From Botryllus schlosseri (taxonomy: Eukaryota): a DNA stretch of 33,000 nt. The notes under the pieces are model-generated. The model did not search any database, was not told the DNA's origin, and saw only the letters and a program-made list of their open reading frames with translations. The DNA lies in the NCBI GenBank assembly GCA_051294905.1, contig CM119383.1, positions 13,175,001 through 13,208,000 on the forward strand, in the 5' to 3' direction. The translations under genes were made by a program, and so were the position numbers. This document shows, piece by piece, positions 1 to 32,071 of the stretch. Each line of letters starts with the position of its first letter. The first letter of the stretch is position 1.

Positions 1-326
1 TTCATCGCATGATGCAGCAGCAGCCCAGTTAATGACATCACCACATTTGCTGCCAGTAACATGCATCCAAGAATGATACGTGATCCAATGCTCGCTTTCC
101 GAGGAAGAACTCTCCTGCTTTATTGATAGCATCTTCCATCCACCGGACTCGGATATATTTTGAGTACTTATGATTTTGACATTGTTCCAATCGTGATTAC
201 ATGAAATCTTTAACGAAGCGTCACTTTTAGAGAGGCTGCTCGGCGAGCATGTGGAGCTTGATTTGTCATCGTCAAGGCATATCTCCACATATACATTCAC
301 TTGGCCGCATAAATCTGCCGAGAATG
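1..326 (-). CDS. Coding exon, continues beyond the window edge
   Basis: Acceptor ttacag at 327-332, phase 1. Open frame AFSADLCGQVNVYVEICLDDD...GGWKMLSIK...HWITYHSWMHVTGSKCGDVINWAAAASCDE. Confidence 0.8.
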
Positions 327-599
327 CTGTAACAGGATTTATTTAAATGTATCATCTGCATACTCAAATATACAGGCACAAATGAATGATTACAACTGAG
401 TATGGTTGGACATCAACAATATAACTTAACAGGCCTGCTTCACAATATGCACAAGATCAATTATGTTGATTGATAGGATTGGTATGTCCGATTCGATTTT
501 TGATATTTTTCTAACTTCAAAACAATGCGGTTTGAAATTTCACTGACAAGAGCAATTGAGCACACATATACTAACCAATCCCACGAAGATGCATTAGAG

Positions 600-1702
600 C
601 AGGGGTGGGCAAACTACGGCCCGCATGCGGCCCGCAACACCGTTCTGTGCGGCCCGCGAGAGTCGAAAGAAACTTTTTTTTTATATTGATAAAATGCGTA
701 CTAAAAATCGAATTATTGCAGGGACTTGATTAACTATTTCTTAGTATATTTCACCATGATAATTCTAAGACAGTGGTTCTCAAACTGGTGGGCTCGCTCC
801 CCTTGGGGGCGTGAAAGCATCTGAAGGGGGACGCGAAGCTAAGCGCAACTGAAAAATTTTCGCGCTCCGCGCGATTTACTTCGAATTCAAAGTTTTTGCT
901 CTGTATTTAGTCTGAATTACATATATTAAAAATCTCTCATCCACAGTCGTAACCTTCCATGCCATTAAACTATCCGTTAGGTTTGCTAGCATCCTGGTTT
1001 CGTTTTGTGATATGACGATAAGGGGGCGCGAAATCTTTTACCATCATAAGGGGGGGGGGGCGTGTCTTAAAAAGTTGATCTAAGGTAAATACTTAATATC
1101 ACAGCGGGATAGCTGCAACGAGATTGACATAATTTGGATCACGAGTGGGATTTCAGATTGACCACTCCATTTTTAATTATTTCAGTGTTGTGCTTATAAA
1201 AAACGATTCGGGCGTGTCTTAGGTAGATTCGTTTGTATGCGTAGAATTGGGGTATTTATATTTTATCTACACATAGTAGAAGCGTGTTTGAAGCTAACAT
1301 GGTTATGATGCTGTCAGCATTGTGTGTCCTGGAACTGAACCAAAAGTGGAATTAGTAAATCTATGTACAGATCGCTGCTCACAGATTTAAATTTCAATCA
1401 TGTTCTAAGAATCGGGCCAACCGACTTTCATCTCATCTCTATAGTTTTGACAATTTTGTTATTGAGGTCCGCCAGCCTATGAAATCTCGCCACTACATGT
1501 TTCTGACGCGTGTACGATATCATCAAAGCAATGTTTGGCTTGATTTAAATAAGCACTTACGTATATTATCTCCATGTCCTCACTATATAATCAAATATCA
1601 ATATTGCGTTTTGGTTAATAATCCCAATTTTATATAGTGCGGCCCGCGAATGGATTCGGATGTTGAATGCGGCCCGCGAGCTCAAAAGTTTGCCCACCCC
1701 TG
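600..1702. mobile_element. Non-autonomous hAT (Charlie/Buster-type) element, 1103 bp
   Basis: Perfect 16-bp TIR CAGGGGTGGGCAAACT; perfect 8-bp TSD CATTAGAG (592-599 and 1703-1710); subterminal GCGGCCCGC repeats at both ends. Confidence 0.95.
771..1076. mobile_element. hAT MITE nested inside 600-1702, right TIR truncated
   Basis: Left end CAGTGGTTCTCAAAC; GGGGGCGCG subterminal motifs at both ends; right end stops at AAAAAGTT without the expected TGAGAACCACTG. Flanks TTCTAAGA and ATCTAAGG match 6/8. Confidence 0.7.
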
Positions 1703-1997
1703 CATTAGAGCCTATAACATACATAATTCATACTTGAATGTCATACAAGAAAATGAGGATGCATTTGCTATGAAATGAAAATGGCTGTTCATTGTTCATT
1801 ACTAGGATTGCCAGGGTTTGTCGGACAATGGCCATGTTATTTGTCCCACTAGTATCCTAGGTAACTTATTCACTCATGTGTGGTAAGCTTCATTAATCGT
1901 TAGTGATGTTAAAATCGCAGCATTATCGGTGTCATAAGAATGTTGAACAAGTGAATTTAAGTTTCTCATACATAGTGAATTCAAGTCAGGTACTTAC

Positions 1998-2291
1998 CTA
2001 AGCCCAACGTAACATCACTGAGATCTATGGTTTGATCAACGTGTATTTTCTTTTGCATGTTTTCAAATGTGCTTTTTGACACGTGGGGGGATACAATTTC
2101 TTTCTTTTCCTCGTATCCAAACGTTTGCGTCTCAACATAGAACTTGATCAGTATGTTTGATGAAAAATCAGTTTGAAAAGTAACTTCGTCAAGCCCTGAG
2201 CCAATATACTTTGCTTGTAAAATGTATGGTTCATGAAACATCAGTTGTGACAAATCCTTTTCATCCACATATGGAAATCGTATGGTCTTCT
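1998..2291 (-). CDS. Coding exon (294 bp, phase 1-1)
   Basis: Acceptor ttttcag, donor G|GTAAGT. Reads EKTIRFPYVDEKDLSQLMFHEPY...DLSDVTL and matches ORF 1981..2268. Confidence 0.85.
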
Positions 2292-2427
2292 CTGAAAAAA
2301 ATATGCATTGAAGTATAAATTAAATTGAGCAGTAACGGTTATCATGTTCAAAATGATGGTGTTACCTAGTCATATTCATAAAACTGATATCAGGTTTATC
2401 CTAATTGTATGAAATAAGTATTTAGAT

Positions 2428-4382
2428 CAGTGGTTCTTAACCTTGCTGGAGATTTTGGAGGGGGCGGAAACGCTCAGGTGGCCATATGGGGGGCGCTGGG
2501 CTCGGGGGGCGATATGGGGGGCGCTGAAGAAAAATGGCTTCGCAGTAGATGATGTGGTAGTAGGACATATCCTTAATGAGAATTCAGAGCAAATTAACAT
2601 TCCACAAAACATTTCAAATCCCGGGATTTTTGGTCGCGCTACGCGACGATGTTTGCTACATATGTTTTCATAAATGTAGTGGGTTATTATAATTCATGTA
2701 AAGAAATTGCGCGTACTTTTAGATCCCAAATTTCCCGTTAAAACAGTGCCGTCACACTTGCTAGGGTTATTTTCAACAAAATGTGTCGGATTAGGTATTA
2801 TATCCCGCAGCGCACAGCGTGTGAAAATCGAGAAGAAGGAGGCACTGTATATCACTTCCGAGAATGAGAGCCCCTTGTACAGAAAATAAGTTTTGAAGCT
2901 TTGTGCACGAAATGAATAACTAAATATACTTGTATTTGAGAGCTACAAAATGAAATCGTCAGAATATTTCTTCATGGTATCATAAAGGATGATACTGTCT
3001 AGTATTGTGGTTCACGGCCTCACATGAACGCTATGAGTTGCTATGTTTGGAATACATTCACGTTAAAATTAATAACTGGGTACAGTACTAAATTCAATGC
3101 GAGCAGATACATGCATCCCATTCTCAGTTGACTTACTAATATAGTTACACAGAGCAGTAAGACAAAATCCAATATCATTAATTTCCCCGTATTGCCAATC
3201 GCAGAGGTGAATTCGGGATGGTTCGAACCACGGGGTATGAGACCGTAACCGCTTGTTGTTATAACAACCTTGATTTGACCCTGAGTATACTACACACAAT
3301 TATGGACCTCGAGCGCGATTAAAGTGCGAAATATTTCCAATAGCAAAGTCCCGAAAAAACCGACTGGACTTTGACCTCTTACCAGGACCGAAACTGCTGC
3401 AACCCAAATCCCCAATCGGTGAGCTCGAAGGGTGCCCTAAATTATTTCGGCGAATGAACATAAATTACACATGTTTTGACGACTCCACGACGGAAGAATA
3501 TGCATAATTATAGAAAATAGAAATGGGCATTTCGGCATCGGCCATTACCACGCCACGATGCACGAAGACATATGAAGTTCTGGTCAATATGGGACTCCGA
3601 GAAGTGTTTCAAAAAGATTGTCAGCAAGAAAACCTTAAGAAAAAAAGCGTCAGCGAGAAAACCCCTCATGTTGAGCGTAAACTTCGATGTATATAAGTCT
3701 AATCGTTCACAATAGGTGTTTAAATCGCTTGTGCCGAATTATCATGTCGTCGCAATCTGCACCCCACAGGACAAATACGGTAACATCCATCAGAGAAAAT
3801 TATTTGCCGTTGAAGAAATACCAATTTTGAATCGTGAGCTTACTTTAGTTTAATACGTTTATGCTTTCAATATCTTTTGACTATATAGCAGACAAAAGGT
3901 AACAAAATAACAACATGTAACGAAATAATTGTAGCAACGGGCACGCCCGAATGTGTTGAATTATTGAATTATTAATCACGTGGCCTTCATTTTCCAATAC
4001 AACACCTCACTCAGCGCTACTGGTAAATCTGATTACGCGGGCTGAGAGGAAAAAAGTTTATAGCGACATATATATGCAATTACCACCTACTCATTCATGC
4101 ATTATAGAAAATTTTGGCGCCTAGGGCGACCAGGCCACACAAACTTTGCTGACCATCGAAATCACGCGACGGGGTTCTTGGGGGCGAAGCCCTAAGAAGT
4201 TTGGTTTATCCCGATATGGGTGCGCAAGACAATCGTTATTTAAGGGGGGCTGACGAAGTGCTGTTACGGCCCTCCCTCTTACCCATTGTCTTTATTACAG
4301 TCCTTACAATATAAGGTGGGGGCGCTGGAGCAAGATATTTTTTGAAAGGGAGCACTGGAGGGAAAAAGGTAAAGAACCACTG
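2428..4382. mobile_element. Non-autonomous hAT element, 1955 bp, with coding-like internal cargo
   Basis: TIR CAGTGGTTCTT(A/T)ACCTT; TSD ATTTAGAT / ATATAGAT (7/8); GGGGGCGCTG subterminal repeats near both ends. Confidence 0.8.
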
Positions 4383-4538
4383 ATATAGATCATGTAATAG
4401 ATATGGCTACATACCAGCAATCCTAATTCTGGAGCTACGAAGGGCATCCTATTATAATGCAAAATGGGTATGTAGTAAAACTTGTATTGCAAAAATACAC
4501 ATACACACACACCGGCAAATAGATAATATATATTTAAC

Positions 4539-4616
4539 CTACTATGACTAATCCAAGTCTCGCAGGTGTCTTTACTTTGAAATCTTTCAAATGATGTCAA
4601 TTTTCTGGTAACCATT
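4539..4616 (-). CDS. Candidate 78-bp phase 1-1 exon containing an in-frame TGA
   Basis: Acceptor aattag, donor G|GTTAAA. Reads EWLPEN*HHLKDFKVKTPARLGLVIV; phase fits both neighbouring exons. Confidence 0.55.
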
Positions 4617-4716
4617 CTAATTCGTAAATATCTTAATTAATCTCAAAATCACTAACACATTTGGATTCATGGATTAAAATTCAGAATACCATAGCCCATA
4701 TAAATAATAACTTTAC

Positions 4717-7280
4717 CTTGTAATGAGTGTATCATCTTCTCGCCAGACAAAAACTCAAACCTCGTCAAGATGAATGGACTGGAGATTTTGTATGCTGATT
4801 GAAAAACGTCGTCTAGATTGATTTTTCCAATATTCACTAGACCGTTGTTAAAATTTGTGGCAAATTGAACATCGATATGATTGTTATATTCTGTAGGCAT
4901 GTGTGTTATGGCAAGGGAGCCTTTCAGATCAACATGATATTTGTGATATAACGACATCTCATCACCAAATACATGTTGTGGATACTTGAGCAGAGTATAT
5001 GTTATATTGTGTGTGTGAATTTCCAGAGATGTGTTTCTCTCGCTATGAAAAGCAGTGAATTCCATATTTTCTGAGATTTCATTAGTGCACATAAGGGTAA
5101 ATTTTATGTGAATAAGTGTATCAAGACTTGTCAAACTAAGTGATGTCAGATTAGAAATTGATCCAAGATCATATTTAGGTACTGGTAGTATTTGTTCGAA
5201 ATGATCTGACATCATCACAGATTGATTACTTGGAAATACCAGTTGATGATCACCAATGAAATCATATTCAACTACTTCAACACGTACCATATCGGTAGTC
5301 ATTTCGCCAACAACCCATGGACCCTGTATCAAGTCACACATTCCAGAAAATTTCATCGATTCGTTGAGTAGCAACATAGAATGCAAATTAAAGTTTTTTA
5401 CATTATTCCCACGAATAAAATCCAGCAAGGGGAGAGATATCGCAAATTCAGCGATTGCAGTGTGTGTTTCTGATTTCTCCTGGACATATACCATTTTTGA
5501 TAAAGTTACCGTTGGTTGTTCCGAATATGAGGATAACAAAAGCAATGTTCTATGATCAATGTATTTTGGCATATTGATATAACCACCCAAAAACATATTT
5601 TGAACATTAGAGTCCTGATGCAAAATCCGTGGAATATTAAGTTCAGTTGTTGCCATCGAAATACTGAGAACACGCAAAGAATCTATACCGACAGAGATCT
5701 CGCGTTGGGGTTGGACAAGTTCGCAGATTTTTCCAGAGTGAATAAAATTATCCATTCCAACACACACATCGAACATAAGATCCTCACAATTTAATGATCC
5801 ATTTCGAATGTTGGTAATTTCATAATGAGACTTTATGGAGAATTTACGTAATTTATCGGCATGATAATATGTTTCACCAATGAAATCAATAGATACTGCA
5901 TCGTAAACATTATTATTAAGTGATTCGTCAATAAGCCGTGACTCAACAAACAGATCCTTTTGTACGTCAAGTTTTGGGTGTATTTCTGTACCATCGACAA
6001 CAACTGATGCAAAAATATCTACCCGAAATACTTCTATATCATTTTCAGCCATAATTTCAAGACCAAACATCGACTTCAATTCAACAATATCAAATACATT
6101 ATTCACCAATAAGTTAAGATTTCGTATCAATTTTCTCATCATGTTGTTGGATGTGTTGATGTCAATTAGATGATCAGGTAAATCAACATTAATCGATACA
6201 TACAAGGGCAATACTTCATAAAGAAGATGTCGTCTGTGAATGGATGGGTATGGGTTGTGATGGTGTAGAAACAAATCGACTTTGTTTTGAAGACAAGATT
6301 TTGAAAAATGGAATAGTCCATCCAAGAAGTATTGGATGTGCTTCATATGACAAAACTGATGTTCACGGTGATGTGCAAGCTCTTTTAATCTCATACCAGT
6401 AATATTAGAGGAAAAACAGTCATTCAAATCGATGGAGTATTCTGTTGTTAGATCAAAGGTAATGTAATGGTCTTTGAGCTCAGCAACAGAAATCAAAGAT
6501 GATTTATCAATAATCGCATCAAATACTACTGCCATCCGTAAAGTTGACGTATTATTCGTGGAATCAAATCCCGACGATAAATAAGCAGAGTTTACTGAAA
6601 GATCAGCCGAGCTGCATGAACATAACTGATCCGTCGTAGCGAATTCAAGACAAGTTGAAAATTCATCAAAGTCATCAGAGCGTATACGAACACATATTGT
6701 GTCGAATATCCCACAATATTGCCATGAAAGAATGGTAGAATAAGTAGCGTTTACCTCTACAAATTCACCAGAATATTTCATCTCAACTGAACTGCTAACT
6801 GAATATTCAATTTCCAATGGTTCATCTGAAAGAATAGAACTTGAATTTCTATCCTGATTCCGAAGATATAACGAGCTATTCATGACTTCTGCATATCTTG
6901 ATTTTGTGAAAGAAAAGAAATAGTTTTTGTGCACCCAAAGACTTATCTCAATCGTTTGCAATACATCGGGAACTATCATTTTAGAATTCACTACTTTCCA
7001 AGCAAAGGAATCGATTTGCGGCTGTATGTCAATGCATGTTACTCGATCAATACACATGTGTGGTAGGAGATGAAGTGGATATGTCAATGAAACATCTTTC
7101 GTTTTAACCGCACAAATGTGTGTGATGTGTAGACAGTCGATAGTAACTATGTTGTGTAAAGTCAGAGTGACTGAGACATGCTGATCTGAAATTTGTGAAT
7201 GATTCTGATTGAGGGTAAATCGACTTTCGAGAACTGCGGCAGCGCCAGGCACGTTGTGAAGAACAATATCAATTGTTTTT
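4717..7280 (-). CDS. Very large coding exon (2564 bp, about 855 codons), product unrecognised
   Basis: Core of the 876-aa ORF 4667..7297. Acceptor ttttttcag|A (phase 2), donor CAAG|GTAAAG (phase 1). Confidence 0.92.
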
Positions 7281-7583
7281 CTGAAAAAACATATCAAAAT
7301 GATTACAAAGAAAGACGGTGGTGGTGATTAATAATTACGTTATTGCACACAATATTGTGGGTACACAATTTCTTACTGAATGGTAAAATCGTAGTAATCA
7401 CATATTATTTGATCAACAAAATTATTTCAATTTGAGACGTATGTCAAAGTTTCGTAAAATTTATATCTAAAATTGAGTTGACAGTAGAATGTTATCGGAA
7501 TAAAATAAACTCATTTTTCCATTTCAAAGTCAGTGGATAGAATAGACATTAAGTGACTGAAACTATAAGAGAAAATCGAATAC

Positions 7584-7981
7584 CTTTCATAGACGGCTGC
7601 ATTTGACAGCACACCAAGCAATGTGATATTTGCAGTGACATTTTCACCCAATATTTCCATAAAGACCTTGGGTGGCATTCTTGGATCATTGATTTTCAGA
7701 TTTGCATTCAATTCCACACCTTCGTATTTCTGAAATATTAACAATGCAAAGACGTAAGATTAAATAATCCATTTTGTCAAATGACATACATCAATTTTAG
7801 TGCTCAGATATATTTCTTCTTCATTTCTCAATTCTAATACTTCAAAGTCCCCAAGTGGACAATTAAATACAGTCTTCGAGCTCAAGATGCTAAAATGTGA
7901 AGGAGCACCACCAGTTGATATGAATAATCCAGTTAGAGCAAGTGGCTTGTCGCAGAATTCATGGAACACTAAATCTTTTCT
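7584..7981 (-). CDS. Two coding exons (7790-7981 and 7584-7729) separated by a 60-bp intron
   Basis: RKDLVFHEFCDKPL...STKID|KYEGVELNANLK...AAVYER. Donors GTATGT and GTATTC; phases 0/0/2 chain into the large exon. Confidence 0.85.
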
Positions 7982-8287
7982 CTGAAAATAGTAATATCCA
8001 GTTTATCTCCTGTTCTTTATACATTACCAGACATGTCAAGCAAATTGACATGAAATGAAGTGGGTATTACAGATTGAACACGGAGCAAATAACTGGAATA
8101 AAGAGAAGGATATAAAATTAACAAAACACAATAAGAAACACTTCTGCATTGTTTTGATATTCTCCACCTTTTCGTTTTTATCAACATGCTCAGAATTCAA
8201 CTTGGACGTGCACCATTCAGTATGAGAAAGATGGAAATCAAAACAGCAAAAAAAATAAAAGTAAATGATAATCAAGTCAGGTTCAGG

Positions 8288-9163
8288 CAGTGTTGGGATG
8301 ACTCGAGTCATGACTTGACTCGAGTCACTTTGCTAAAATGACTTGACTTTACTTGACTCGGTGTATCAGAAATGCGGATTGACTCGTGACTCGAAGTAAA
8401 ATTAACGAGTCAATTTCAAGTCATCAAACAAACAATGTCGATAAAATCACTCTTCATGGTCGGATTGTTCGCGAAACGCTGGTATAACCCGTGAAAGCGA
8501 CCAATCATTTAATGATTGTGCGTTTTACTGAATCTCCATTGTTCACTCATAAATAAATTGACCACAATCGATATGATCGGAGCATACATCTTACGCTGTC
8601 GCAAACTAGTATAGTAGAGTAATTTAATGGCAAAATGTATACTTCCGTTCTCTGTTCTTACCTTAACCAAACTTCTTGTTTTATTGAAATTGAATTCGAA
8701 TATAGTTTATATAGTCCTCGACCATTGGCGCAGGCTCGAATTGTTTCATATCAATTTGTAAATGGGTAATGTATTGCATCTGATAGTTCGTTTCTCTATT
8801 CTCTATTTTGGCTGGTAACTAAACTGAGGCTATGCAATTACTTATGTAGTTTAGCATTTCTATGTATATGTGAGCGACACAGCGCCTTCTTACGTGCATA
8901 TTTAACTCTATATTCGTTCATCGGTTCAGAATCAATGACCACTCAATCTGTATTTCAGACAGCTAGCAAAATACAATGACGTAAGCATGCCTCATACTTC
9001 GAAAAGGACTTGAATTGTGGCTTGACTCGTGACTTGACTTGACTTGACTCGACTTGACATGAGCCACCTTCAAAAATCGAGTGATTAGACTTGACCCGAG
9101 TCAAAATCTGCAATGACTCGAAATGACTCGTGACTCGAAGGTAGTGACTTGATCCCAACACTG
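8288..9163. mobile_element. Non-autonomous hAT-like element, 876 bp, with GACTCGAGTC / GACTT subterminal arrays
   Basis: Perfect 12-bp TIR CAGTGTTGGGAT; perfect 8-bp TSD GGTTCAGG (8280-8287 and 9164-9171). Confidence 0.95.
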
Positions 9164-9255
9164 GGTTCAGGATATCTGTTTATATCTCAAAATCACTAGG
9201 AGAAAACTACACTAACAAATATAAACATGAAATGATGTATCCAAAAGCACAAAAA

Positions 9256-9450
9256 TTAATTTATGTGTGTCATAGAAGTAACATACAATACATGCAGGCT
9301 AACAATAGTAAATGAAAAAATTACCGAAATAGGAGCAACTCCACTGAATGAATAGAAATGCTCGTATGACGTCTTAGGTATGCGAGTGTCCAGTATGTAA
9401 CGCATCTCCAGAGTTTCTGGCAACTCCAGCATGATGATAGCGGATTCGCT
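9256..9450 (-). CDS. Probable coding exon, boundaries unresolved
   Basis: Open frame SESAIIMLELPETLEMRYILDTRIPKTSYEHFYSFSG in the same orientation as the host gene; splice sites not fixed. Confidence 0.4.
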   Translation of the reverse strand, partial: SESAIIMLELPETLEMRYILDTRIPKTSYEHFYSFSGVAPISVIFSFTIVSLHVLYVTSMTHIN

Positions 9451-10056
9451 ATTGTTGCTCATGTAATCATGCATATACGAAAAAAACATGATGGAGAACG
9501 GTTCGGAAAATTCTTCAAGACTCTAAGGAAAATAGAGTGCCTTTGATAGAAAATTTTGATATCATTTTGATATATTACAGTAAAACAATTTATCAATGTA
9601 TATTAAAGGGCGAAAAGGGTTTTGAGAAACAAGGCGATATGAATAAAAACAAAGACGGCATCTATTGAAAATATGAGATCTCCGATATTATTGTAAGTCT
9701 TCAATTTTTAATCCATCAGTAAAAAAACACTAGAAATACGGTGTTTCGAATGGCATATCTGCCTTGTTTGCAAAACCTTTTAAATCATTGTGGATCTTGG
9801 TCAAAATACCTGTGGATTTCCTTTAGTTTCTCGTATATGGTTACTTTAAATTTGTGCTTCGAAGATGATTACCACTCCCATATTACAATAATAAGTACCA
9901 ACCTCAATACTAAGCTAACTGTGAGGTTCAGCCGCGTATACAAATTTCATTTTAATGGTCATTATCGCTTTTTATCTTTTCAACCTACGCTTGCATTTCA
10001 ACGTCTATAGCAGGATCTACTTAAACACTTTTACCTTGCTGAATATCCTTATGAAG

Positions 10057-10432
10057 CAGTGGTTCTCAACCGGTGTACCGATTGGACTACCCAGGGGTGC
10101 CGGAGAAAATGAGGTAAAAAGGGGTGCTGTCGACATATAACAAAAATTAGGGATGTCTAAGTTATAAGTAGCGTTTGAGAAGCTGATGACTAAATACAAA
10201 GGTCGTAACCGGCGATGAGGGAGATATTGAGGCTTTGACGAAACTATTTTTAGTCACCAACATCAGAGTCTGGGGAGGAACACAGTAAACAGTGATATGA
10301 CATTAGTTGAACAGCTTTTTTATTCATTAGATTCCCAAATCTTGAACACATGGAACTCGAAGTGAGAGGGTGCCGTGAACTATGTTTCCATTACGTAGGG
10401 TGCCGTGAGGTCATAAGAGTTGAAAACCATTG
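10057..10432. mobile_element. hAT MITE, 376 bp, older copy
   Basis: TIR CAGTGGTTCTCAAC versus CAATGGTTTTCAAC (12/14); GGGTGCCG subterminal repeats; degraded TSD TTATGAAG / TTATAGAT. Confidence 0.8.
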
Positions 10433-10637
10433 TTATAGATCTTTCACATGGAATTCTGAAAGACAACCGTTGACAGCAATACCCTCGCAATCGACACATA
10501 CAGCAATGGTAAAGATTCGAACTACATGCAAATATGGCAATTGAGTAGATGTTGAAATCAGGTAAATATTTGCAGTCACTTTGTAAAAATTTTACACAAA
10601 CGAAAATCTTCCAAATTACAGCCAATGATTCCTCTAC

Positions 10638-20260: not shown

Positions 20261-22151
20261 GTATTAGTATGAGTGGCGTTCGAACTAAATATATACCAAC
20301 GTAGCTATTGAGGCCAATGAATGTACATATTCTGAAAATATAAGCTGCAAATTTGTGATATCACTTTCAGGATCAGAATGTCAAAGAATGAAAATAAACA
20401 ATTCATTGTTGCGTCTATTTAGTAATAATGTTGTTAAACCCTGAGATATTATTGCGTGACCAAGTCACCGACATGAAAAACAAACTTTCAAGGTCATACC
20501 TGCCCATTTCTTCCATCAGAATAATCACTGTCATCACTGTCAATCCAAGCCACAAGTTGGCATTGGTCCGAAGCACCTACAAATGATCAAAACTATGAAT
20601 CTGAAATTTTCAAACCCAACATAAGAACGCACCTGAACAACATACTCTAACCACATCCTGCACCGGTATAACTATATCTCCAGATATATACAGGGTTTGA
20701 TCAGTTACTGATATTGGGCTCTGCATCATTGAGATCTGATCGGCAGACTTTTTCGAATCAAGTTTGAGACTTGCTTCCGGATTAAACAACTTCATCCCGG
20801 ACAGATATATGTTGAAATTGAATTGGAAAACATTACGCCGATCTTCGGGTATCCCATTCAATTCAAACCTGCCAATTGATGGATACACGTCTACAGTGAA
20901 ACATCAATAAATCGAAAGTGTCCATAGAAAAGTCATAGGCTAATCAACAACAAAAAATACTATTTCAAATCAAAATATGAAGAAAAAAAAAATCATTTTT
21001 TTGAGCAATTCACATAATAACTTGGCTTACATCGCGTTTGCAATAGACCTATTACTCTTAATTTTACATTTAATTTCGAGATTGAACGTTACATACATTG
21101 AAATAACCAGCAGTCTGACTTATCCAATGCACTCTATTCAAAAGATATAATTAAAACAGGAATATATCAGATCAAATGAGTTACAAAGTTGTATTTATTT
21201 CAGCGAGACATTTATAGGTGCTACTTTAATTGCTTAAGTGACAAACCAGTTGACTGACAGCTCAATTAATTTGATCATACCATTGTCACTCAGATAAAAT
21301 AAAACTATTAGAACTTCTCAAATGAACGCCATTTTCATATGTCACTTCAATAAACTATGACTCAGTTAATAGTTTTCGATTAGGAAATATACAGCTGGGT
21401 CTAATGTGATTACCTTTCCGAGTTGGCTGATGTTCGGACAGCAAGATTGTACTGGACATGAATTTCAGCATCTACTGTATCAAGTGAAGGATAGAGTATG
21501 TAGTTGATGCCAAACTTTGGCGAGAGGTTGATATATTCCACCGTGTCACACGAGAGAATATTAAAATTGTCTGTAGCTTTGTTATTCTCAACAACAATTG
21601 GATCCAGACTGGATGTATAGCTTGAAGATCCAGGTATGATCTCCACATGAACATAACGCTAAAGAAAGAACATTATGTTAAAATCAGATTAAATAAATGC
21701 AATAAATATTTAAAGTTACATCATAGATAACTAATCATCAATCAATATCAGTACTTGGTGTAGTTTGAGGTGGAAGATATCCCTGTTACAATGAAATTTT
21801 CCAATACTACAGATGAAATCACTAGATATTGTGACTAATTTTGAAGCAATGCCGATATATGAGTCTATGACTCCTAATGCAATTGACTGTCACACTACCC
21901 ATTAAATGTATCAAAGAAGCAAATGTAAATATGCAGGAATTTCTATACATATTCTTGGTCGGGTAAACAAAGTAACGGAACTACGAAAATAGGCGTACAT
22001 GACGGGAAATTCAATAAACACTCACTTGTCGGGTACATGTATCGGTAATTGGGATGACGATAGTTCCATCAACAATGTACTTTTTGATATAGTTGTTTCT
22101 GTCAAAACCACTCGATAATGTTGGAGAAGACAGCCATGTATTGTCAATTGT
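20261..22151 (-). CDS. Exon cluster (22026-22151, 21755-21886, 21414-21658, 20646-20890, 20500-20576, 20261-20331)
   Basis: GT-AG boundaries. Peptides include KKYIVDGTIVIPITDTC and VFQFNFNIYLS. One phase join between 21414 and 20890 is unresolved. Confidence 0.65.
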
Positions 22152-22204
22152 CTGAAAATAAATTTTTCGAACGTGACACTTATTAGATATATTATAATCT
22201 AAAA

Positions 22205-22703
22205 CAGGGGTGGCCAACCAGTGACCCGAGAGAAAGTTTTGAGTGGCCCGCAACTTAATTGTCAAAATTAGTTAACAAAAATGTATTACCCAAGTAATTT
22301 CTTTTGAACTTACGAGGCCAACCAAAAATTTGATTAGTCTGACCATGAAATTTGGGATGTTGATGAATATAATATCAGTTATGACAGAGTGGCATAGCCA
22401 GGGGCCAGCCACATTTTTCGTAGTTCTTCGTACATTATTATGGAGTAGAATATTTCTCCGCAGATTTGACTGGAGATGAATGATAGACGCATGTTCGCCG
22501 AATAGTCCATTCCTTGCATACAGAGACTGGGTTTTCATTACATTAATGTTATCGATTATGATGCGTACTAAAACAAATCTTGTTTTCCTCGCTACTGAAT
22601 CCGGCTCGCTCCTATCAGATGACTAACAATGATACATAAAAGTGACCGTGCAATGATTAGTAAACTGCATGTGGCCCATTGGCCGAAAAGGTTGGCGCCC
22701 CCG
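22205..22703. mobile_element. hAT (Charlie-type) MITE, about 500 bp
   Basis: Left TIR CAGGGGTGGCCAACC, degenerate right end GGTTGGCGCCCCCG; GTGGCCC subterminal motifs; TSD ATCTAAAA / GTCTAAAC (6/8). Confidence 0.8.
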
Positions 22704-22887
22704 GTCTAAACGAACTACTATCAAGTAGCTAATTTCATCGCCGACGTGGGAAAGGGAGCGAAATTTATTTTTCAAAAATAAGGTTGTTTTGCGTTGCAAT
22801 TACGTAAGTGAAACGAGACAACTAACTCATCAGACTTGATGACATAGTCGGTTAGTGCTATATCCCAGGTTTTGGCAGATACATAAG

Positions 22888-23992
22888 CATAGGCGCCGAA
22901 CGCTAATTTTCCTTAGGTATGCGGGTTCGATGACGTCACAAAAGAATGACGTCATAATGCGACAGAATTGATATTTAGGGTTAATATAGCATCAATTCAT
23001 GAGGGTTAAGTGCATGCGTAAATGCCGATTATACAGTCTCCTCATGTTAACGAACTTGCGCGTATGATAAGCTTGTCAACGAGTCCGGAAGTGCTGTCAA
23101 TTAGCGAGTCCCTGATCGCTCGCGAACGATTAAATACGCCGCTTATCAATGTGTATTACGTAACCTCCGCGACGATTAGCGCAAGTCAAAATGTCCGAGT
23201 TGTTATGGAATCTGTTCTATAATGGCACCGATTTCAGGTTGTTCAAACCATACTCGTCTTTTTCAACTCAAGCCTTGACAGCCATTTTCTGATGGTTATG
23301 TTTAAGTATTAGCGTAATTCAATTACACATGCACGGCGAACGCACAATCGCACATGTCTGCGGACATTCAATGTCATCCAGTTTCGCGATGTCACTCTTT
23401 AATCACAATCGTTAATCAGCACACACCTAACGGCATTGTCTCCAAGCCAGCGAGAGATTGGAGCCAACACATGCTAGGCTCAAGACGCGATAGTTGGCCA
23501 ATGGCCAGCGATGATATCTTTCGTATCAGGCCTATTGCAGATGCGATTGTGTAGGCAAGCGATGATATCGTGCGCACCAATGCAGATGCGATAGTGCAGG
23601 CTAGCGATGGTACAGTACGCACCGGGCCTACTGCTGATGTAATTTTTCAAGCTAGAGAAACTAGGCTTGTTGGAGACGCGATAAATCAAGCAAGCGTCTC
23701 AAGCGACGATTGCCGAGCGCATAATTTCGCGATCATCTCAGCGGGAAAGCGCGTGGCGTTACATTGTGCCGCACAGACGAATCTCGCTAATTGGCCGCGC
23801 GCAACGGATTACCTCGCTCACATAAGCGGCAGCAGGTAATGTCGTAAACGGAAATACATTGCGATTTGTTCTAAATAACACAATCGGGGTTTATGCCGAT
23901 GCATGCCAAACTGAATTCTAGGTATGCCGCATACCTAAAAAAATGTCTAGGTATGCATGGCATACCTTGCATACCCAGGTTCGGCGCCTATG
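22888..23992. mobile_element. Non-autonomous hAT-like element, 1105 bp, with CpG-rich repeat-coding cargo
   Basis: Perfect 14-bp TIR CATAGGCGCCGAAC; TSD TACATAAG / TACACAAG (7/8); TAGGTATGC / GCATACC subterminal repeats. Confidence 0.9.
23483..23715 (+). repeat. Degenerate tandem repeat, about 5 units; the middle three are 45, 51 and 39 bp
   Basis: Core GA(T/C)GCGAT(A/T)GTG(C/T)AGGC(A/T)AGCGATG; translates as a repeated ADAIVQASD-like peptide. Confidence 0.75.
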
Positions 23993-24120
23993 TACACAAG
24001 GTAGCGGGTTCAGATCCCATTTAGTAGCCATACTTATTTTCTGTGCTACCATTTTAAAGCTTTTTCTTCTTCTCGCCCGCCTCAATGAGGTTAACAACAC
24101 CGTTATATATTTATACACAC

Positions 24121-25344
24121 CTCCAGATTGATAACATCCAATGCTCCATTAATGTCACTTGATAGCCACAGTTTGAAAAACACATTAGTAGCAAGCCACC
24201 CTTCTTGAGAGCTGTCTTTCAGAATCGAACAGAAGTAATCAGCAACGCATTCCATTTCAATCTCCAATTTGACTTTGCTTGTAATCCCAGGATATAATGG
24301 CGTGGAAAAGGGGATGAAGTTGAAGGATCCGTCGACAAGTTTGAAGACATCGTAGGTACAGGTTACATTTTTCTAGAAGTTGGTTTGAAAGTGAAAATAT
24401 GTTAATAAAATAAAGGAATTTAACAACTTTGGTTGGGCAAATATATTTTAAAATGTATGTGAATTTATATACTACTATTGTTGTAGATATGACTGAAGAC
24501 TTTTTAATGTGGGATACTATAGTAAAGGGATTGCATGATGGATTTAGGGGATAAGACACAGCACATGACATTTTCATATGTATTCATATGCACATTATAC
24601 TATAATTAAACATTAACTTCGGAAATATAACATATATGAGGATCAATGGTGTTAATATGCATATATGCGTATACATGCGTATATATTGAAAATTGCCTCT
24701 TAAACTTATAAAATATCAATATATTCCTGGTAATATTTTCCATGTGATAGGTTTCAATACATTATCATATCACATAATGTCTTATTTGACATCCTCGAGA
24801 AAGGGCTTTAGAGAATGTCGGTATGGAACCTGATATGGGAAGGATACAAGACAACAACAAAATTTAGTTCACTGTACATCACTGTTGAAAAATAGAACCA
24901 ATCAGTCGTATCAATGGCTGGCTAGTTTAAAAAGATCTAAAACAAGGCTATTGAAGGAAGGACGCAGCTTAACAGTGTAGAAAGAGTGAAAATCACATAC
25001 CCGTACAAATAACTCCTTTTCTGACAATTTCAAGAAATCGGACCGTCCGATTTCACTTATTTGTATTCCGATGAATGGGTTCCCACAATACTTCAAGTTG
25101 AATGTCGCCATTTCATATACAAACTGATTGATAATCGAGTCTTTTTGGAAATTTGGAGATTCTGCTGTTGCAAATTGTATTTTGGAAGATTTCCATAATA
25201 TTGCTCCTGACATTGACATTATTAGCAATCTCTCGTCGTTGTAATCAATATCCTCATTACTCGTCAAGACAAAAGTGAGTATTATGGATGACAAATCCAA
25301 TTTTTCCTGAAATTGCATTTGAAGTACTGTATTATTTTTCAACA
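24121..25344 (-). CDS. Two exons (25001-25344 and 24121-24372) with CARDB-like motifs
   Basis: LTFVLTSNEDIDYNDERLL...KYCGNPFIGIQI...|KNVTCTYDVFKLVDGSF...FFKLWLSSDINGALD. Donors GTATGT and GTGTGT, phase 0/0. Confidence 0.85.
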
Positions 25345-25765
25345 CTGGGCGTAAATTTCAATAACACACATACATAGAAATATCCAATATTGATACATTA
25401 TTACTTTTAAGTAGAGTAGAAGCATAGATATCAATTTAATGAGCACATATCAGAAATTATAACGGTATTATTCTGTGATAACTTATGCAGTAGCCCATTA
25501 TGGGTTCGGTAAAAACAGCTTAGCATGGCAACATATACAGAGTCCCCGATTTGGCGATAACTGCTCAACGGGGACATCGTCGTGCTCAGGTTGCAGAATC
25601 TCTCCTGTCGGTGGACGGTCTATTAGCGCGCCATCAAGACCAGCCAAGTACAATTTATGTATCAATTTACTTATCTTTCAAATCCAGAGCCACACCTTAA
25701 TATGACAAAATACTTCAATCAGCACTGAATTAAGGTAATTTACTATCTCTAGTAGACAATACAAA

Positions 25766-25982
25766 TGTGGCAGCCCACCCATTAGGGGTGTGTGTGTGTA
25801 ATGATTGTTAGTTGCTATTGTGATGGTACTGTTATTTCTGGAGCCGCCAAGTGTCTAGCATTGACTACGTGAAATGGACACTTGGTGGACACATGACAAT
25901 GCATGCTCCCTTCTTGTCTGAACTGGCTGCCGTGAGGACGCAGAAATAAAGCTGTCTAAAAACTATTGTGAATCTCTTTACA
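25766..25982 (+). mobile_element. Possible solo LTR, 217 bp
   Basis: Starts TGT, ends ACA, AATAAA at 25945-25950. No clean 4-5 bp TSD. Confidence 0.3.
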
Positions 25983-26329
25983 TAGACTATATTAGGAGGT
26001 CTCCCACACAAAGACACTCGCATACATGCTCGCTACTGCCTAACCTCAAGTGAAAAACCGTGTGCAGCCAGAATAACCTCAGCAAATATTCTACATGATT
26101 CTAAGGAGAAGGAACAGGTGTGAGCAATCAAGTGTGACGAAACAAATGTAATTACTGGACTGCTACAAATCAATTACCATGGTTTTCACAACTATACCAC
26201 TTTGCTTGGTATTTTAAACTTGCTAAACGAAGAATTTACCAATATTATGCTGTTTCATTAAAGATTGACAGTCGAATTCAGGCCCCAAAATATTTTCGGA
26301 CCAAATACAAATATAATCATGATATAAAA

Positions 26330-26645
26330 GAAGAGCAAACAAACAGAAAAGGTGCTACCATATCAAGTAATCCATGTTGTGAAGTAATCCCAGTTTCAAG
26401 TTCGACGGAAACCATTCCAGATCTCACAACAGGTTTGCTCTCCAAACTTTTCTTTTCGATAAAGATTTCACCAGACGTTTTGGCCGCAGACAAAAACATC
26501 AGCGGCGTTCTGACGAAATCACAGTCTACCTACAAAAAATCAAGAGAAGATAATCAATCTCACCGTTCCTGAAAGGTCATTGATCAGAAAAGAATTGAGC
26601 ATAGGTATGATGGCACAAATGAAGTCATTCTGTGATTGTGATACA
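26330..26645 (-). CDS. Two probable exons (26564-26645 and about 26330-26529)
   Basis: VSQSQNDFICAIIPMLNSFLINDLSGT|VDCDFVRTPLMFLSAAK...; this join requires a 34-bp intron. Confidence 0.5.
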
Positions 26646-26713
26646 CTAATTCTCTCAGCACATGTCATCACAACCAGCGATTAGTCAAATTGACTTAATT
26701 CTAGAATCTAGGT

Positions 26714-27077
26714 CAGTGGGTCACAGTTTTTTCGATTCATTGACTCCTTATCAAGCACGACACAAATTTTCGCCCCATAAATTTACTGATCTGAAAGAGA
26801 GGACACATAATCGGGAATTTATTCACCCAACTCTTATCCCTGGTGAATTGAATAAAAAAGGGTAATTTTTCCGAGTAGGTGCTCGGAAAAATGGTTTCTG
26901 CGTCTACTTTCCGTTGAGTTGACCTTTTTTCGCGTCATATGCAGAATAAACCGTCTCCACATGCATATTTTGGCCGTGTTAATTAAATATATCTGACTAG
27001 ACGTTCTAACATTTTCGACCCCTTGTTTCTCAAAATTGCCCACTGAGGGGCGATTTCACTCACGTTGGGAACCACTG
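26714..27077. mobile_element. hAT MITE, 364 bp
   Basis: Ends CAGTGGGTCAC... and ...GTTGGGAACCACTG; TSD ATCTAGGT / ATCTAGCT (7/8). Confidence 0.85.
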
Positions 27078-27177
27078 ATCTAGCTCTGACAATCCAATGC
27101 AATGTTATGCTGATGAGAGAACTCTTTGCTTGAAGGACATCATAACTAGTGACTGATTACACTAACACCAGCTGATG

Positions 27178-27224
27178 CAGTTTACTTCAGTTTACTTCAG
27201 GTTACTAGTTTACTTCAGGTTACT
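27178..27224. repeat. Short degenerate 9-10 bp tandem repeat, CAG(T/G)TTACT(T)
   Basis: cagtttactt cagtttactt caggttact agtttactt caggttact. Confidence 0.8.
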
Positions 27225-27549
27225 GGCTCAACTTATACAACTGTTGCAGCATTCCTGATGTCAACCGATGATAAGAATGAATAAAAATCAGACTAAAAAG
27301 GCCGTGAACTATAGTTTCAATAGTTATCTCATCGATACTACTAGGAAAAGCACCAAGTAGTAAATGTCAAGCTTACATTAGAACATTGTACAAAATTTCA
27401 AACAACTAAAAGATAATGGGATTTAAATAGTGATAAAATATCACAGTGCTATTTCATGAACAGATATATATGGAGATTGTGAGCGTAAAGTAGCAACAAT
27501 AATGTTTGCATGAATCAAAAAATACACAGATGAAATAATATAGATATTA

Positions 27550-28181
27550 GGGCTGTTCAAAAAAAAACTTTCTTCAGATTTCACTGGCTATGTGATAAAA
27601 TTGTTAGGTTGATGAAAACAACGCTGCACACCAACTTTGGCTCAATTCCGACCAGCAGAAGCGATTTTCTTGCAGTAGACAGTTTGGAAATTATTATTAA
27701 AAAATATAAAAACCTAAATTTTAAAATTTTCCTGTCAACCCCATAAAATTGTTAGGCTGTCCGTAGAGATGATGCACACCAAATTTGGCTCAATTCCAAC
27801 CACTAGAAGCGAAGTTATTGCTGTAGAAAAAATTTCAATTCCATGATTTTATAATAAATATTTAAAGAGTTGACCACCGCAAATGCTATTTTATTCTAAT
27901 CAAAATTTTTCTATGGCAATAAATTCGCTTCTAGTGGTTGGAATTGAGTCAGATTTGGTGTGCATCATCTCTACTGACAGCCTAACAATTTTATGAGGTT
28001 GATAGAAAAATTTTGAAATTTTTATTTTTTAATGATAGATTCAAAACTTTTTACTGCAAGAAAATCGCTTCTACTTGTTGAAATTGAACTAAAGTTGGTG
28101 TTCCGCGTCGTTTTCACCAACCTAACAATTTTATTACATAGCTAGGGAAATCTGAAAAAAAAGGTTTTTTTTGAACAGCCC
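27550..28181. mobile_element. Foldback-like element, 632 bp, with inverted arms of about 280 bp
   Basis: Ends GGGCTGTTCAAAAAA... and ...TTTTTTGAACAGCCC flanked by TA. Each arm holds two copies of an ATAAAATTGTTAGG...GCACACCAA.TTTGGCTCAATTCC.ACCA..AGAAGCGA unit. Confidence 0.9.
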
Positions 28182-28240
28182 TAAATATATATAAGCGTCA
28201 TTCCAAAAACATGCAGAACGAATGATATTTCAAAACATAC

Positions 28241-29374
28241 CCCTTCGAATCCTGTCTGAACAAGAGTCGGGATGCACTTACTTTGATGGGATAAGACTTG
28301 TGATTATCGATTTCTTCGGTATCTTGGGGATGCTCAATTGAAAGTATGACATGCAAAATGTCCCGACAGAAATGCTCCGGGATACGTATCTCCATCCGAG
28401 CCCCAGTAACGGCGAAATACCCGAAAGGATTCAATTGCTGAGAGTACATGTATGATTCCAACTCCGTGACATTAATCACTGTCAAAATAACACCGTTTAT
28501 TTGTTTTTCAGCTGAATTGCCCGTCGAGATGGACAAAATTAACTAAAACATCATACACTACTCCTAAACTTGTACCGCTAAAAATATTCCATTTTGTGTG
28601 CTTAAACGTTTGTTTTTAAGATATTTGATTACCCACTATTTTCCATACGATCAGTTCTAATTAACTAAATGTATTTCAAGTTGCAGATACATCCCATCAC
28701 AAAAAATCTTACATCTGAATACTATATTCATATTTATTACCCAAATCTTTTCGACATGCAGCCCAGAAGGGGTTAATATCAGCTATTATGCGAGCATCCA
28801 AAAGTCTTGTTTATCTTGGAATATAAGTATCATTTATCAGTGACGTTAAATTAGTAGAATTACCTGAGTATATTAGTAGGTCATCATTGTCCAAAATTGA
28901 ATCGTGGGACAAATGGAAATTGAAATCAAGTCCGTCTTTATTTCCTCTCAAATTTATGAATCGATCTCCGACGTTTTGAATGCCGATATCAACCTGAACA
29001 AGTAATCATAAATAACCATAACTCTGCTCATTAGCCATAGACCAAGAATGTCCTTGTGCTTCATTGCTAACAGTGCAAGAATTTGAGTACATGAATTCAA
29101 TGGTTTATCTCGATGAAAACTACTTCGTACAGAATGGATTGGATATAGATAGAAGAGAGTGACAAAAAATAGTGATTTAAATCATCACAATACCGAAAAC
29201 TAATCGTACAAAAGCGGAGAGAGTGAATGCAGTAAAATTATTTTGTGATGCGAATCCTTGATCACTATCATTACCAGTATATCATCCGAGTTGTAAGGAT
29301 TTACATTGTTACTATTGTAAATAACTGAGAAATTCGAGTATACTACATTTGATAATACATTGACTAGAGATTTT
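28241..29374 (-). CDS. Exons 29275-29374, 28713-28993 (with in-frame TAA) and about 28241-28580; CARDB-like
   Basis: VDIGIQNVGDRF...FNFHLSHDSILDNDDLLIYSG...IPR*TRLLDARIIADINPFWAAC; ILSIEHPQDTEEIDNHKSYPIKV. Donors GTAATG, GTAAGA and GTATGT. Confidence 0.7.
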
Positions 29375-29450
29375 CTATGTATAAAACAGGAATGCCCAAT
29401 ATCCGGCAGAGTGCAATCTACTTTTCGGATGCACATGTAAATGTGATCAG

Positions 29451-30306
29451 TAGAGCGATTTTTTGGACATGTCAAAAAAGTCAAAATTTTGCCAAAATTG
29501 TAGCGTTAGGTCAAAAAAATGTCAAAATTGTTTACACGGTCAAAATTTTTTTGCAACTTGCATTTCGTTTGTATCGTAGATGATTGTGAACTTATTGATA
29601 TTTGACAGCTTGTAGCCCAATTTATCGGTCTAACGTTGTAGCCGGCCCATTGTCTGCTCATTGTGAATCATAAACGGCCAAATGAAACAAAAAGGTTGGC
29701 ATGGTGTTATGCTCAACGTGCCGCAATATCCTAACAGAAGCAAGTATGCGTGGGCAATGGGCATTGGTTTTTATATCAACAAGCGCATGATGAAAAATTG
29801 TCAGAATGAAGCAACACGGTGAGTCAGCAACAGTATACTGTACACACAGCTTCAGTGTTGCCAGCCAACAACTGCTACTGTTGAGCGTTCTTTCTCCATT
29901 CTTGGCAAGCTACGTAGTAAGGACAGACACTTTTTACCCGAGAATGTAGGTAAGTATCTTTCGTTGTACTACAACAAATTTTAATTAGTTCTCCCATAAT
30001 GCGAGATGTAACTACTGGAATTCTTCATGGGACCAGATTTAGTGGAAATAAAGATCTTTCATGTAAAAAGTTGTCAGTTTTCAAGTAAAAAAAGTTAGCT
30101 CAGGCCTAATTACTTCATAATGACAGACAGTTCCAACCAGAAATGAAGATAAGTAGTACAATTCTATGATTTTGCGGGAAACCACCTAATTAACACACGT
30201 GAGGTCAAAATTTGGTCAAAATTAAGTTTTTCAATGTCAAAAAAAGCCAAGATTTTGATTTTCAAGGTCGACATCTTTCATTTTTTAGGTAAAAAAAATC
30301 GCTCTA
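29451..30306 (+). mobile_element. Internally deleted hAT element, 856 bp
   Basis: 14-bp TIR TAGAGCGATTTTTT; perfect 8-bp TSD GTGATCAG; GTCAAAA subterminal arrays at both ends. Confidence 0.95.
29772..29984 (+). pseudogene. C-terminal fragment of a hAT-type transposase (dimerisation-region motif)
   Basis: YINKRMMKNCQNEATR*VSNSILYTQLQCCQPTTATVERSFSILGKLRSKDRHFLPENVGKYLSLYYNKF*; PT-A-VERSFS is the hAT C-terminal motif. Confidence 0.8.
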
Positions 30307-30527
30307 GTGATCAGCCAACGTGTTTACTGAAAACGGCCAATACTCATGCTGCCATCTAACTATTCCCAAAGGTGATCAAAATGAAGTACTCCAATGTTTT
30401 CAGTGTGCTCAAGTAATTTTTGACTACTTCTGACTCCTTCAACTTCAACTACTGGACAATTTTTTTCAGCAAAACTACTTATTTTTTACAAGTGGAAAGT
30501 AGTTTGGCATATGCCTATTGCCTACAT

Positions 30528-30600
30528 CAGAGGTCTCAAACACGCGGCCCGCCAGATCATTCTGTGCGGCCCGCGAATACATTTTAGATTTTTAAGTATT
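30528..30600. mobile_element. Left end of a Charlie-type MITE related to 600-1702; right end not found
   Basis: CAGAGGTCTCAAAC followed by GCGGCCCGC...TTCTGTGCGGCCCGCGA, as at 600-660. Confidence 0.7.
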
Positions 30601-31052
30601 TGACAATATATAAGTGACAGATATATATCTATTTAGGTTTAAAAGTTAAAATTCCTTCTCAAATTGCTCCGAAAGCCTGAAACTATTCATCATACTTCAC
30701 CATCACATCAATTGCAAACGCTACCATGCTGCAAAAGATTCACTATTTCGCCACATTTCCAATTCATGATGATAAAACCGGACCCTTAGATGATTCGTGA
30801 CTGAAATTTATAAGTTGTTGTGACTTGGACGCGAACTTTCGTAGAATTACTCGGACTCCTGCAGACTCGATGACAAAATGAGAGTGACTCAAGTGGACTC
30901 GGAACGCCGAGTGTCAACAGTTATTTTGTGTTAGATGCAAGGATGGATTTTTTGATTTTCCCTCCAATTCATTGTTGTAAGTGTGCGACCCTCGATCAAA
31001 TCTTCTTTTTACAACTATTTATTTAAGTGCTGTACAAACTTTAATTTGCTAC

Positions 31053-32071
31053 TTCCATATGATGTAATTTTGACATCTCATGGAAATTGATACTTCTACA
31101 TGCAACTGTGCATAAATTTGGCTTAATGGCTTAACTTCTGCTTCAGTAGAAACACTGGCTACTTTGACAACCTAAGATTATTTCACAGTTCCAGGCTATC
31201 AAACTAAGATACATCACCTAGTTGATCTAGTAGTCTAAAAATAGTTTACCTGTACCGAGTAATCATGCGACACCGGTATTTTGCATGCTTGGTGTATGCC
31301 GAATTCTCTCAAAGCGATTGCATTGTTTTTGCACATGGCTCTGAACTTCAGACAGCTGAAATAACACAATTCAATCTTTTAGAAGTAAATACCTGAGATG
31401 GATGTAAAGAAAAGATGTACCTGACGGGGCCTCCAATTCCCAATTCATTTTCGGCAGTGTGTATATTAAATTCGTCAACGTGTGACCAACGAATATTACC
31501 GACCGCGCTGCACAAGTATATCATTTCTCCACATTTATCAATCAGAGAAGTGCGATTCAAGTATACTCCATCCGTGTCGTTGTAAATCACGCTCCAGACA
31601 TCATTCTCCTTTTTATGAAACTGAACCGCAGAGTTGGGAAGATTATATCCAAGATGGAAGTTCCTGCAAGGGCACAAAAAAGTGCTTACACATGGTAGAA
31701 ATAACATTTCATAGTTTTTCACCTGGTTGAAATTAACGGATTCATTACAGATCCGACGAAAAATCTGAGACCAATTTGCGAAGCCGGATTTTGTAACTGG
31801 GTGCCGTCAAGAGACAAAGCTTCGATCGTTATGGCGAAAGGTATTCTCGTACCAAGGTATATGAAGGGATCATAGAAATTCGCAGAGAATTCAGAGACTT
31901 CCAATCGCAATCCAACTGCAACGGCAAGATTTTGACAAAATAAGTCAAACAGTGTGAACTGAAAATAACCTTACTTGGGTTGCAAAGATCAGCAGCGAAT
32001 TCGGTAATGTCGAAAAAGATCTGATTGTTGGTAATTTCATCATTCAATTGGTTAGTCGATTTCAAGGTTGT
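31053..32071 (-). CDS. Exon cluster (31975-32071, 31723-31915, 31421-31663, 31250-31355, about 31053-31171)
   Basis: Introns of 59, 59, 65 and 78 bp with phase chain 1/2/2/0. Reads FDITEFAADLCNP|IGLRLEVSEFSANFYDP...|RNFHLGYNLP... Confidence 0.8.

Follow-up and report, generated by a model that had tools for sequence, protein, structure and literature searches.

We describe a 33,000-nucleotide (nt) stretch of the Botryllus schlosseri genome (positions 13,175,001-13,208,000 of contig 13 of the 495-Mb genome G000; hereafter the window), which is probably the central part of a very large animal gene, present as a single copy, that encodes an extracellular protein. The minus strand of the window carries a long chain of exons that encode a C-type lectin domain and, for the greater part, sequence that belongs to no recognisable family. 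This long unannotated stretch is very likely a chain of strongly diverged immunoglobulin (Ig)-like sandwich modules, each of which would comprise about 100-160 residues. In at least six of the modules, a strand with cysteine-glycine and an end rich in acidic residues and asparagine appear to be retained, and these modules would in this be most like the C-terminal part of CARDB and DUF11 domains. We lean towards a true kinship of the motif-bearing modules with CARDB/DUF11; a prokaryotic origin of the modules, by contrast, we regard as improbable.

Extent and conservation of the gene

Our exon-chaining program, which weighs codon log-odds (trained on long exons), GT-AG splice sites under a generic model and a prior on intron length, joined 44 exons with 3,459 codons along the minus strand of the window (score 275), whereas the same program found 590 codons on the plus strand (score -29.5) and 282-500 codons in three shuffled windows (scores -31 to -44). 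As the minus-strand codon count lies far above those of the plus strand and the shuffles, the spliced, open-ended minus-strand frame of about 3,500 codons proposed in a preliminary description of this stretch, made from the sequence alone, holds. The chain was forced into a single path and is crude beyond the four introns confirmed by RNA (see below). The longest minus-strand open frames comprise 886, 428, 170 and 152 codons, and the plus-strand maximum is 147; neither the 428-codon nor the 886-codon exon has a second match in the genome, and the gene is thus single copy. The window has a G+C content of 34-43% and no runs of N; a scan with Rfam returned no RNA families, and its tandem repeats are trivial.

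Both the start and the end of the gene lie outside the window, in which no first-exon or terminal-exon signature was seen. With the 50-kb flanks that we fetched on either side, the gene extends over at least about 80 kb and, in our crude model, some 7,000-9,000 codons, with motif-like exons upstream of the window to at least +45 kb; neither a signal peptide nor a clear transmembrane helix was found.

Public RNA-derived contigs and reads, placed on window positions 11,000-16,999, confirm four minus-strand GT-AG introns of 60-65 nt (Table 1). At one of them, 11304-11363, a reading of open frames alone would have counted 60 nt as coding. The exon at 16508-16616 that had been read from the sequence is exact according to the RNA contigs, and those at 15378-15600, 25001-25344 and 28713-28993 agree with the exon-chain model. 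Native introns measure about 55-65 nt, and 21 of the 43 model introns fall between 45 and 80 nt; two long introns are filled by dispersed repeats, copies of which lie on many contigs, with thousands of first-look candidates. From the short introns and the repeat-filled long ones (both of the long introns tested), it therefore follows that the native introns of the gene are short and the long ones bloated by transposons.

A search of 1.84 billion representative proteins with the 886-codon exon returned a single distant relative (P0001; 22% identity, E 1e-12). The contig that encodes it, L001 (15.8 kb, from a distantly related species), is collinear with our gene over the 886-codon exon and 17 more exons after it, as far as an exon with a NIDO domain downstream of the window, and shows an additional weak match at window positions 11107-11520. 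Between the two species the module exons are 21-24% identical, the NIDO exon 34%, and the short EGF and TSP1 exons 38-68%. Conservation in the module exons falls on exactly the residues of the motifs, namely W-N-x-G, C-G, N-N and C-P-G-D. The NIDO exon has further relatives at 85% and 48% identity; searches for further relatives of the module exons returned none. As judged from these comparisons, evolution has been much faster in the module exons than at the NIDO end, and such fast divergence of the rod that they may form (see below) would fit a role in recognition or as a barrier.

The probable module chain and its likeness to CARDB and DUF11

The preliminary description had reported that four motifs recur along the frame. 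They do occur at the four places that it named (16508-16616, 28713-28993, 25001-25344 and 15378-15600), and some of them are enriched in a crude 6,670-residue gene model compared with its shuffles: the CG dipeptide was observed 13 times (6.2 expected), CGxx[LIVMF]x[LIVMFAC] 4 times (0.8 expected) and the LSxDxxLDxxDxxL type 3 times (0.25 expected). By contrast, VxNxG shows no excess over the shuffles, the D..N..E..NN type is not enriched even in a relaxed form (3 vs. 1.2 in shuffles), and the strict form of each motif matches the window once. Strict D-x-x-N-x-[VIL]-x-E-x-[NDS]-E-x-N-N stands at 16523-16564, and degenerate forms of it can be aligned in six modules; the C-P-G-D-type pattern is rare. 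An all-against-all BLASTP comparison of the minus-strand open frames detected no internal repeats. A looser composite pattern was discarded, as it did not separate the strands (9 vs. 5).

The modules were compared with CARDB (PF07705) by several profiles. With the Pfam profile, the exon at 16508-16616 scores 20.6 bits (E 5e-4; cut-off 22.7), and the RNA-confirmed spliced module to which it belongs scores 20.3 bits (E 6e-4), the match covering only profile positions 66-99, i.e. the last third. With a hidden Markov model (HMM) built from 19 archaeal CARDB domains, the same exon scored 23 bits and no other rose above noise. A second HMM, which started from the gene's own motif, settled on eight units, two of them in L001 and six in our gene (three in the window, at 16508-16616, 18041-18220 and 19132-19356, and another three downstream of it); its reversed-sequence control reaches E 0.24. 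When these eight modules were compared by hhalign with 17-19 archaeal CARDB domains, they aligned in the correct register over the C-terminal 38-42 columns only, with P 2e-4 and a probability of 44-46%; removal of the best module left P 0.013 and removal of the best two P 0.047. In the controls, 60 column shuffles never fell below P 0.24, and a PKD_4 profile from the same archaea gave P 0.91. A phmmer search with the RNA-confirmed module, which yielded borderline matches only, and a search of PDB sequences with the module profile, which yielded only a chance match to RNF4, were set aside.

Among the neighbours found by language-model features and by predicted structure, the same families recur. 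In the Atlas, two separate exons have CARDB, DUF11 and NPCBM_assoc clusters as their nearest neighbours (0.80-0.88), values that count as leads only by the standard of the tool; for one of the two, the 428-codon frame, the values are 0.82-0.88. For one module downstream of the window (L003:7456-7956, minus strand; from C-P-G-D to the next C-x-G), AlphaFold produced from the module and one orthologue, without any CARDB sequence, a model with seven to eight strands (predicted local distance difference test, pLDDT, 56.6; predicted template-modelling score, pTM, 0.49). Nine of the 30 best AlphaFold DB clusters found with this model are named CARDB; its shape matches in the Atlas include CARDB and DUF11 clusters with TM 0.58-0.62; and it superposes on the CARDB structure of P. 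furiosus (3idu) with Z 7.3 and 2.5 A over 107 of 116 residues. Foldseek against solved structures returned RhoGDI and UNC119. An alignment of eight module rows was rejected for folding, its N-terminal half being too poor.

Taken together, these weak lines agree (Pfam E values of 5e-4 to 6e-4, hhalign, features and structure), and to this extent they partly support the CARDB label that the modules had been given; the label applies to a handful of modules, all of them under the thresholds. The wording that the gene is built from recognisable CARDB repeats goes too far, as most of the protein cannot be assigned. With CARDB and DUF11 (PF01345), Ig-like modules of prokaryotic cell-surface proteins, the modules seem to share the motif D-x-x-N-x-[LIV]-x-E-x-x-E-x-N-N after a C-terminal strand, clear in the best module and degenerate in five others or more; a V-x-N-x-G turn early in some of the modules; a predicted sandwich of seven to eight strands that superposes on the P. 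furiosus structure; and an arrangement in long tandem chains on extracellular proteins. They differ from them in their sub-cut-off scores, in that most of the protein is unrecognisable, and in a module length that varies from about 100 to 160 residues; in a conserved C-G and an inter-module C-P-G-D, which the archaeal domains lack; and in being split by introns within the architecture of an animal matrix protein.

Extracellular domains and known matrix proteins

The claim of a C-type lectin domain is well founded: three exons that we spliced by hand match Lectin_C (PF00059) with E 2.5e-10 and 41.5 bits, above the cut-off of 22.6, over profile positions 29-106 of 107. The phases of the exons fit; one of the four splice sites is confirmed by RNA, and the other three are putative. 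Unspliced, the single exons gave no Pfam matches. The triplets EPN and QPD of calcium-dependent sugar binding are absent from the spliced sequence, which has F-L-N in place of WND; therefore "lectin-like" is the better name, and sugar binding is not implied. Upstream of the window, at about 49.5-50.5 kb in its coordinates, two further minus-strand exons (L005:6556-6783 and L005:7288-7527) resemble by eye a second lectin-like domain (W-I-G-G...C...V-C-E), which Pfam did not confirm exon by exon; these exons may lie in the N-terminal region of the giant gene itself.

Downstream of the window, Pfam finds exons with EGF, EGF_CA and TSP_1 (E 7e-10 for TSP_1) domains, a weak NIDO domain (E 2e-3; its 18.5 bits fall short of the cut-off, 25) and, further on, at least six EGF-CA-type exons (cEGF/EGF_CA, E 1e-9 to 1e-16) and another TSP1-like exon; the NIDO exon of the relative has PF06119 on record. 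From these EGF, TSP1, NIDO and EGF-CA exons we conclude that the protein is an animal matrix or adhesion protein, and the earlier proposal of a giant extracellular gene of an animal, with a genuine C-type lectin domain, is upheld. Pfam returned no AMOP or VWD match on the candidate exons, and a genome-wide AMOP scan had no match at this locus. A minus-strand exon at L006:6667-7167 (window -23333 to -22833) reads G-G-G-D-P-T-F-L-T-L-D-G and looks by eye like the start of a VWD domain, with zero Pfam matches. Other genes of this genome, on contigs 6, 12, 5 and 16, have much clearer NIDO domains (best E 1.8e-19); that of the giant gene is a diverged one.

We found no full-length match to a characterised family, and the searchable literature contains no description of such a protein and nothing relevant on CARDB in animals. 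Two known kinds of protein are similar in architecture. In the giant matrix proteins of the hemicentin type, TSP1, a domain of nidogen type and EGF repeats that bind calcium come after a long chain of Ig modules, and our gene presents its parts in the same order: a very long chain of probable beta-sandwiches, TSP1, a domain of the nidogen family and many EGF-CA repeats. However, its modules are not of the I-set, it has NIDO instead of G2F and an embedded C-type lectin domain, no VWA domain was seen in it, and no sequence kinship between the chains is detectable. MUC4, SUSD2 and Mesh-type proteins carry NIDO-AMOP-VWD-EGF cassettes; in our gene, likewise, NIDO is followed by an exon with a G-D-P-T...D-G stretch that is VWD-like by eye, and later by EGF repeats. 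The complete NIDO-AMOP-VWD cassette was not found, with NIDO below its cut-off and AMOP and VWD undetected by Pfam; the giant gene also has TSP1 repeats, and neither a mucin-type repeat region nor a transmembrane helix was found in it.

By analogy with these proteins, the module chain could form a long semi-rigid rod that would project the lectin domain and other binding surfaces from the cell or the matrix, and the EGF/TSP1/NIDO/EGF-CA end would anchor this rod in the matrix or on the surface of the cell. Such rod-plus-anchor working, as in hemicentin-like or MUC4-like proteins, is the most likely mode of action; in the comparison with hemicentin, it is likely for both.

Alternative readings and further features

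Several of our results weigh against the reading of the window as part of a single giant gene of CARDB-like modules. No module reaches the Pfam cut-off for CARDB, a six-frame CARDB scan of the whole genome returned no matches, and 36 of the 37 open frames of the window that were tested, exon by exon, have no meaningful Pfam match, the remaining one being the CARDB exon. The 886-codon exon has no usable Atlas neighbour; AlphaFold failed on a whole 443-residue exon with its one orthologue (pLDDT 31.7); and the module model downstream of the window is of borderline confidence, its module has no CARDB profile match (P 0.31), and its best solved-structure matches (VIA-align) are generic Ig-like sandwiches, namely RhoGDI (Z 9.5), RbmA, integrin alpha, transglutaminase and A2M. 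AMOP, VWD, a transmembrane helix and a signal peptide were all undetected, so that the anchoring of the protein is a matter of inference only. Finally, collinearity shows a single transcript for the 3' third of the window only, and beyond the junctions confirmed by RNA our model of the gene is crude.

Much of this would be accounted for if the modules were ordinary, very diverged eukaryotic Ig-like (E-set) domains without specific CARDB kinship, their C-G and N-N ending being convergent or E-set-wide: RhoGDI, UNC119, integrin alpha, transglutaminase and A2M MG structures rank at or above the CARDB structure, every sequence score is sub-threshold, the modelled module lacks a CARDB profile match, and motif counts are low. 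We consider this explanation possible but rather unlikely, given that hhalign is specific for CARDB over PKD and keeps its register without the best module; that libraries of predicted structures return CARDB and DUF11, not FN3, cadherin or I-set domains; and that two exons independently reach CARDB/DUF11 clusters by language-model features. The CARDB-like modules could also have come into this animal lineage by horizontal transfer from a bacterium or archaeon, with later gain of introns and multiplication within the gene. The CARDB and DUF11 matches are prokaryotic in the tools used, fragments of only four relatives were found in public data, and the best module has a near-canonical CARDB ending; yet the searched libraries are dominated by prokaryotes, and prokaryotic neighbours are therefore expected anyway. 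No specific prokaryotic donor or close sequence was found, similarity being at the detection limit; the shared cysteine pattern C-G...C-P-G-D is absent from all 19 aligned archaeal domains; and the modules, which spliceosomal introns interrupt, lie within a matrix protein of typical animal kind. For these reasons we consider a prokaryotic origin improbable and horizontal transfer as just set out highly improbable, and the earlier suggestion of a prokaryote-derived module finds no specific prokaryotic relative to stand on. It is likewise a long shot that an animal lineage took up a prokaryotic CARDB/DUF11-type module and multiplied it to a chain of dozens of fast-evolving units within a giant protein of the matrix or of recognition, thereby founding an undescribed animal family.

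As to the number of genes, the window could hold two or more adjacent minus-strand genes instead of one. Transcript continuity extends only over short RNA contigs, L001 is firmly collinear with the gene only in the 886-codon exon and what lies downstream of it (the match at 11107-11520 being weak), the exon chain was forced into a single path, and a 605-codon open frame lies just upstream of the window. Motif-bearing modules nevertheless flank the lectin domain on both sides and occur on both sides of the window edge; inside the window we saw no signature of a first or terminal exon, no signal peptide and no transmembrane end; and the tested long gaps are due to inserted transposons. Several genes are thus unlikely, and one very large gene remains our preferred reading.

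Giant multi-module extracellular proteins are common in invertebrates, and the kind is therefore already known. What is unusual here is that thousands of codons belong to no recognisable family and have almost no relatives in very large databases, and that the few recognisable modules point to CARDB/DUF11, a group known chiefly from bacteria and archaea. Should the kinship be true, the CARDB/DUF11 family would extend into animal matrix biology, and the gene would offer a test case for the origin and quick divergence of new adhesion or recognition proteins; if it is false, the gene is still a good example of Ig-like chains that drift beyond sequence detection.

Table 1. Positions of gene parts, introns and repeats in the window
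Feature	Positions	Strand	Basis or remark
Internal part of the probable giant multi-exon gene	1..33000	-	exon chain compared with plus strand and shuffles; collinearity with L001 downstream
Dispersed repeat of ~1.8 kb filling a long intron	2445..4250	.	at least 50 copies, 81-89% identity
Largest open frame, 886 codons (exon about 4838-7280)	4670..7327	-	family unassignable
Intron, 60 nt, GT-AG; in frame and without stops, yet removed	11304..11363	-	RNA contigs (runs X5, X6, X7)
Lectin domain, last exon, ends Y-I-C-E	11364..11498	-	donor RNA-confirmed
Repeat in intron between lectin-domain exons	12170..12700	.	very high RNA-contig depth, many mismatched joints
Lectin domain, middle exon, W-T-W-E-D-G-S	13051..13119	-	putative GTAAGT donor
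Lectin domain, first recognisable exon, ends F-W-I-(G)	13723..13823	-	putative ends
Exon, degenerate C-terminal motif L-D-D-N-F-L-D-E-S-I-I-Q-N-N	15378..15600	-	zero Pfam matches
Intron, 60 nt, GT-AG	16448..16507	-	RNA contigs
Exon, C-terminal third of best CARDB-like module; C-G...D-x-N-N-L-L-E-E-S-D-E-T-N-N	16508..16616	-	both ends RNA-confirmed
Intron, 65 nt, GT-AG	16617..16681	-	RNA contigs
Exon, N-terminal two thirds of best CARDB-like module	16682..16881	-	both ends RNA-confirmed (run X7)
Intron, 65 nt, GT-AG	16882..16946	-	RNA contigs
Open frame, 170 codons; module end at 18041-18220 (C-G...N-N-V-V, then C-P-G-D)	17735..18244	-	
Open frame, 428 codons; one motif-bearing module at 19132-19356	18448..19731	-	single copy
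Dispersed repeat of ~1.1 kb filling a long intron	22888..23993	.	at least 40 copies elsewhere in genome, 77-91% identity
Exon, variants L-T-S-N-E-D-I-D-Y-N-D-E-R-L and Y-C-G-N-P-F-I-G-I	25001..25344	-	zero Pfam matches
Two model exons (28864-28993, 28713-28782); V-D-I-G-I-Q-N-V-G, F-H-L-S-H-D-S-I-L-D-N-D-D-L-L	28713..28993	-	exon alone without Pfam match

Three further features concern the surroundings of the exons. The repeat in the intron between the lectin-domain exons contains a 27-nt tandem repeat at 12615-12672 and is probably a small, abundant, transcribed mobile element. The unbroken 605-codon frame just upstream of the window (L004:2633-4447, minus strand; window 35633-37447) has zero Pfam matches and may be a mobile-element gene within an intron or an unusually long exon. 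On the other side, at about -42.8 to -41.7 kb, the next gene downstream on this strand is a separate one for a seven-transmembrane receptor of the rhodopsin family (L008:7185-7949, minus strand; 7tm_1, E 1.5e-13); it limits the 3' end of the giant gene.

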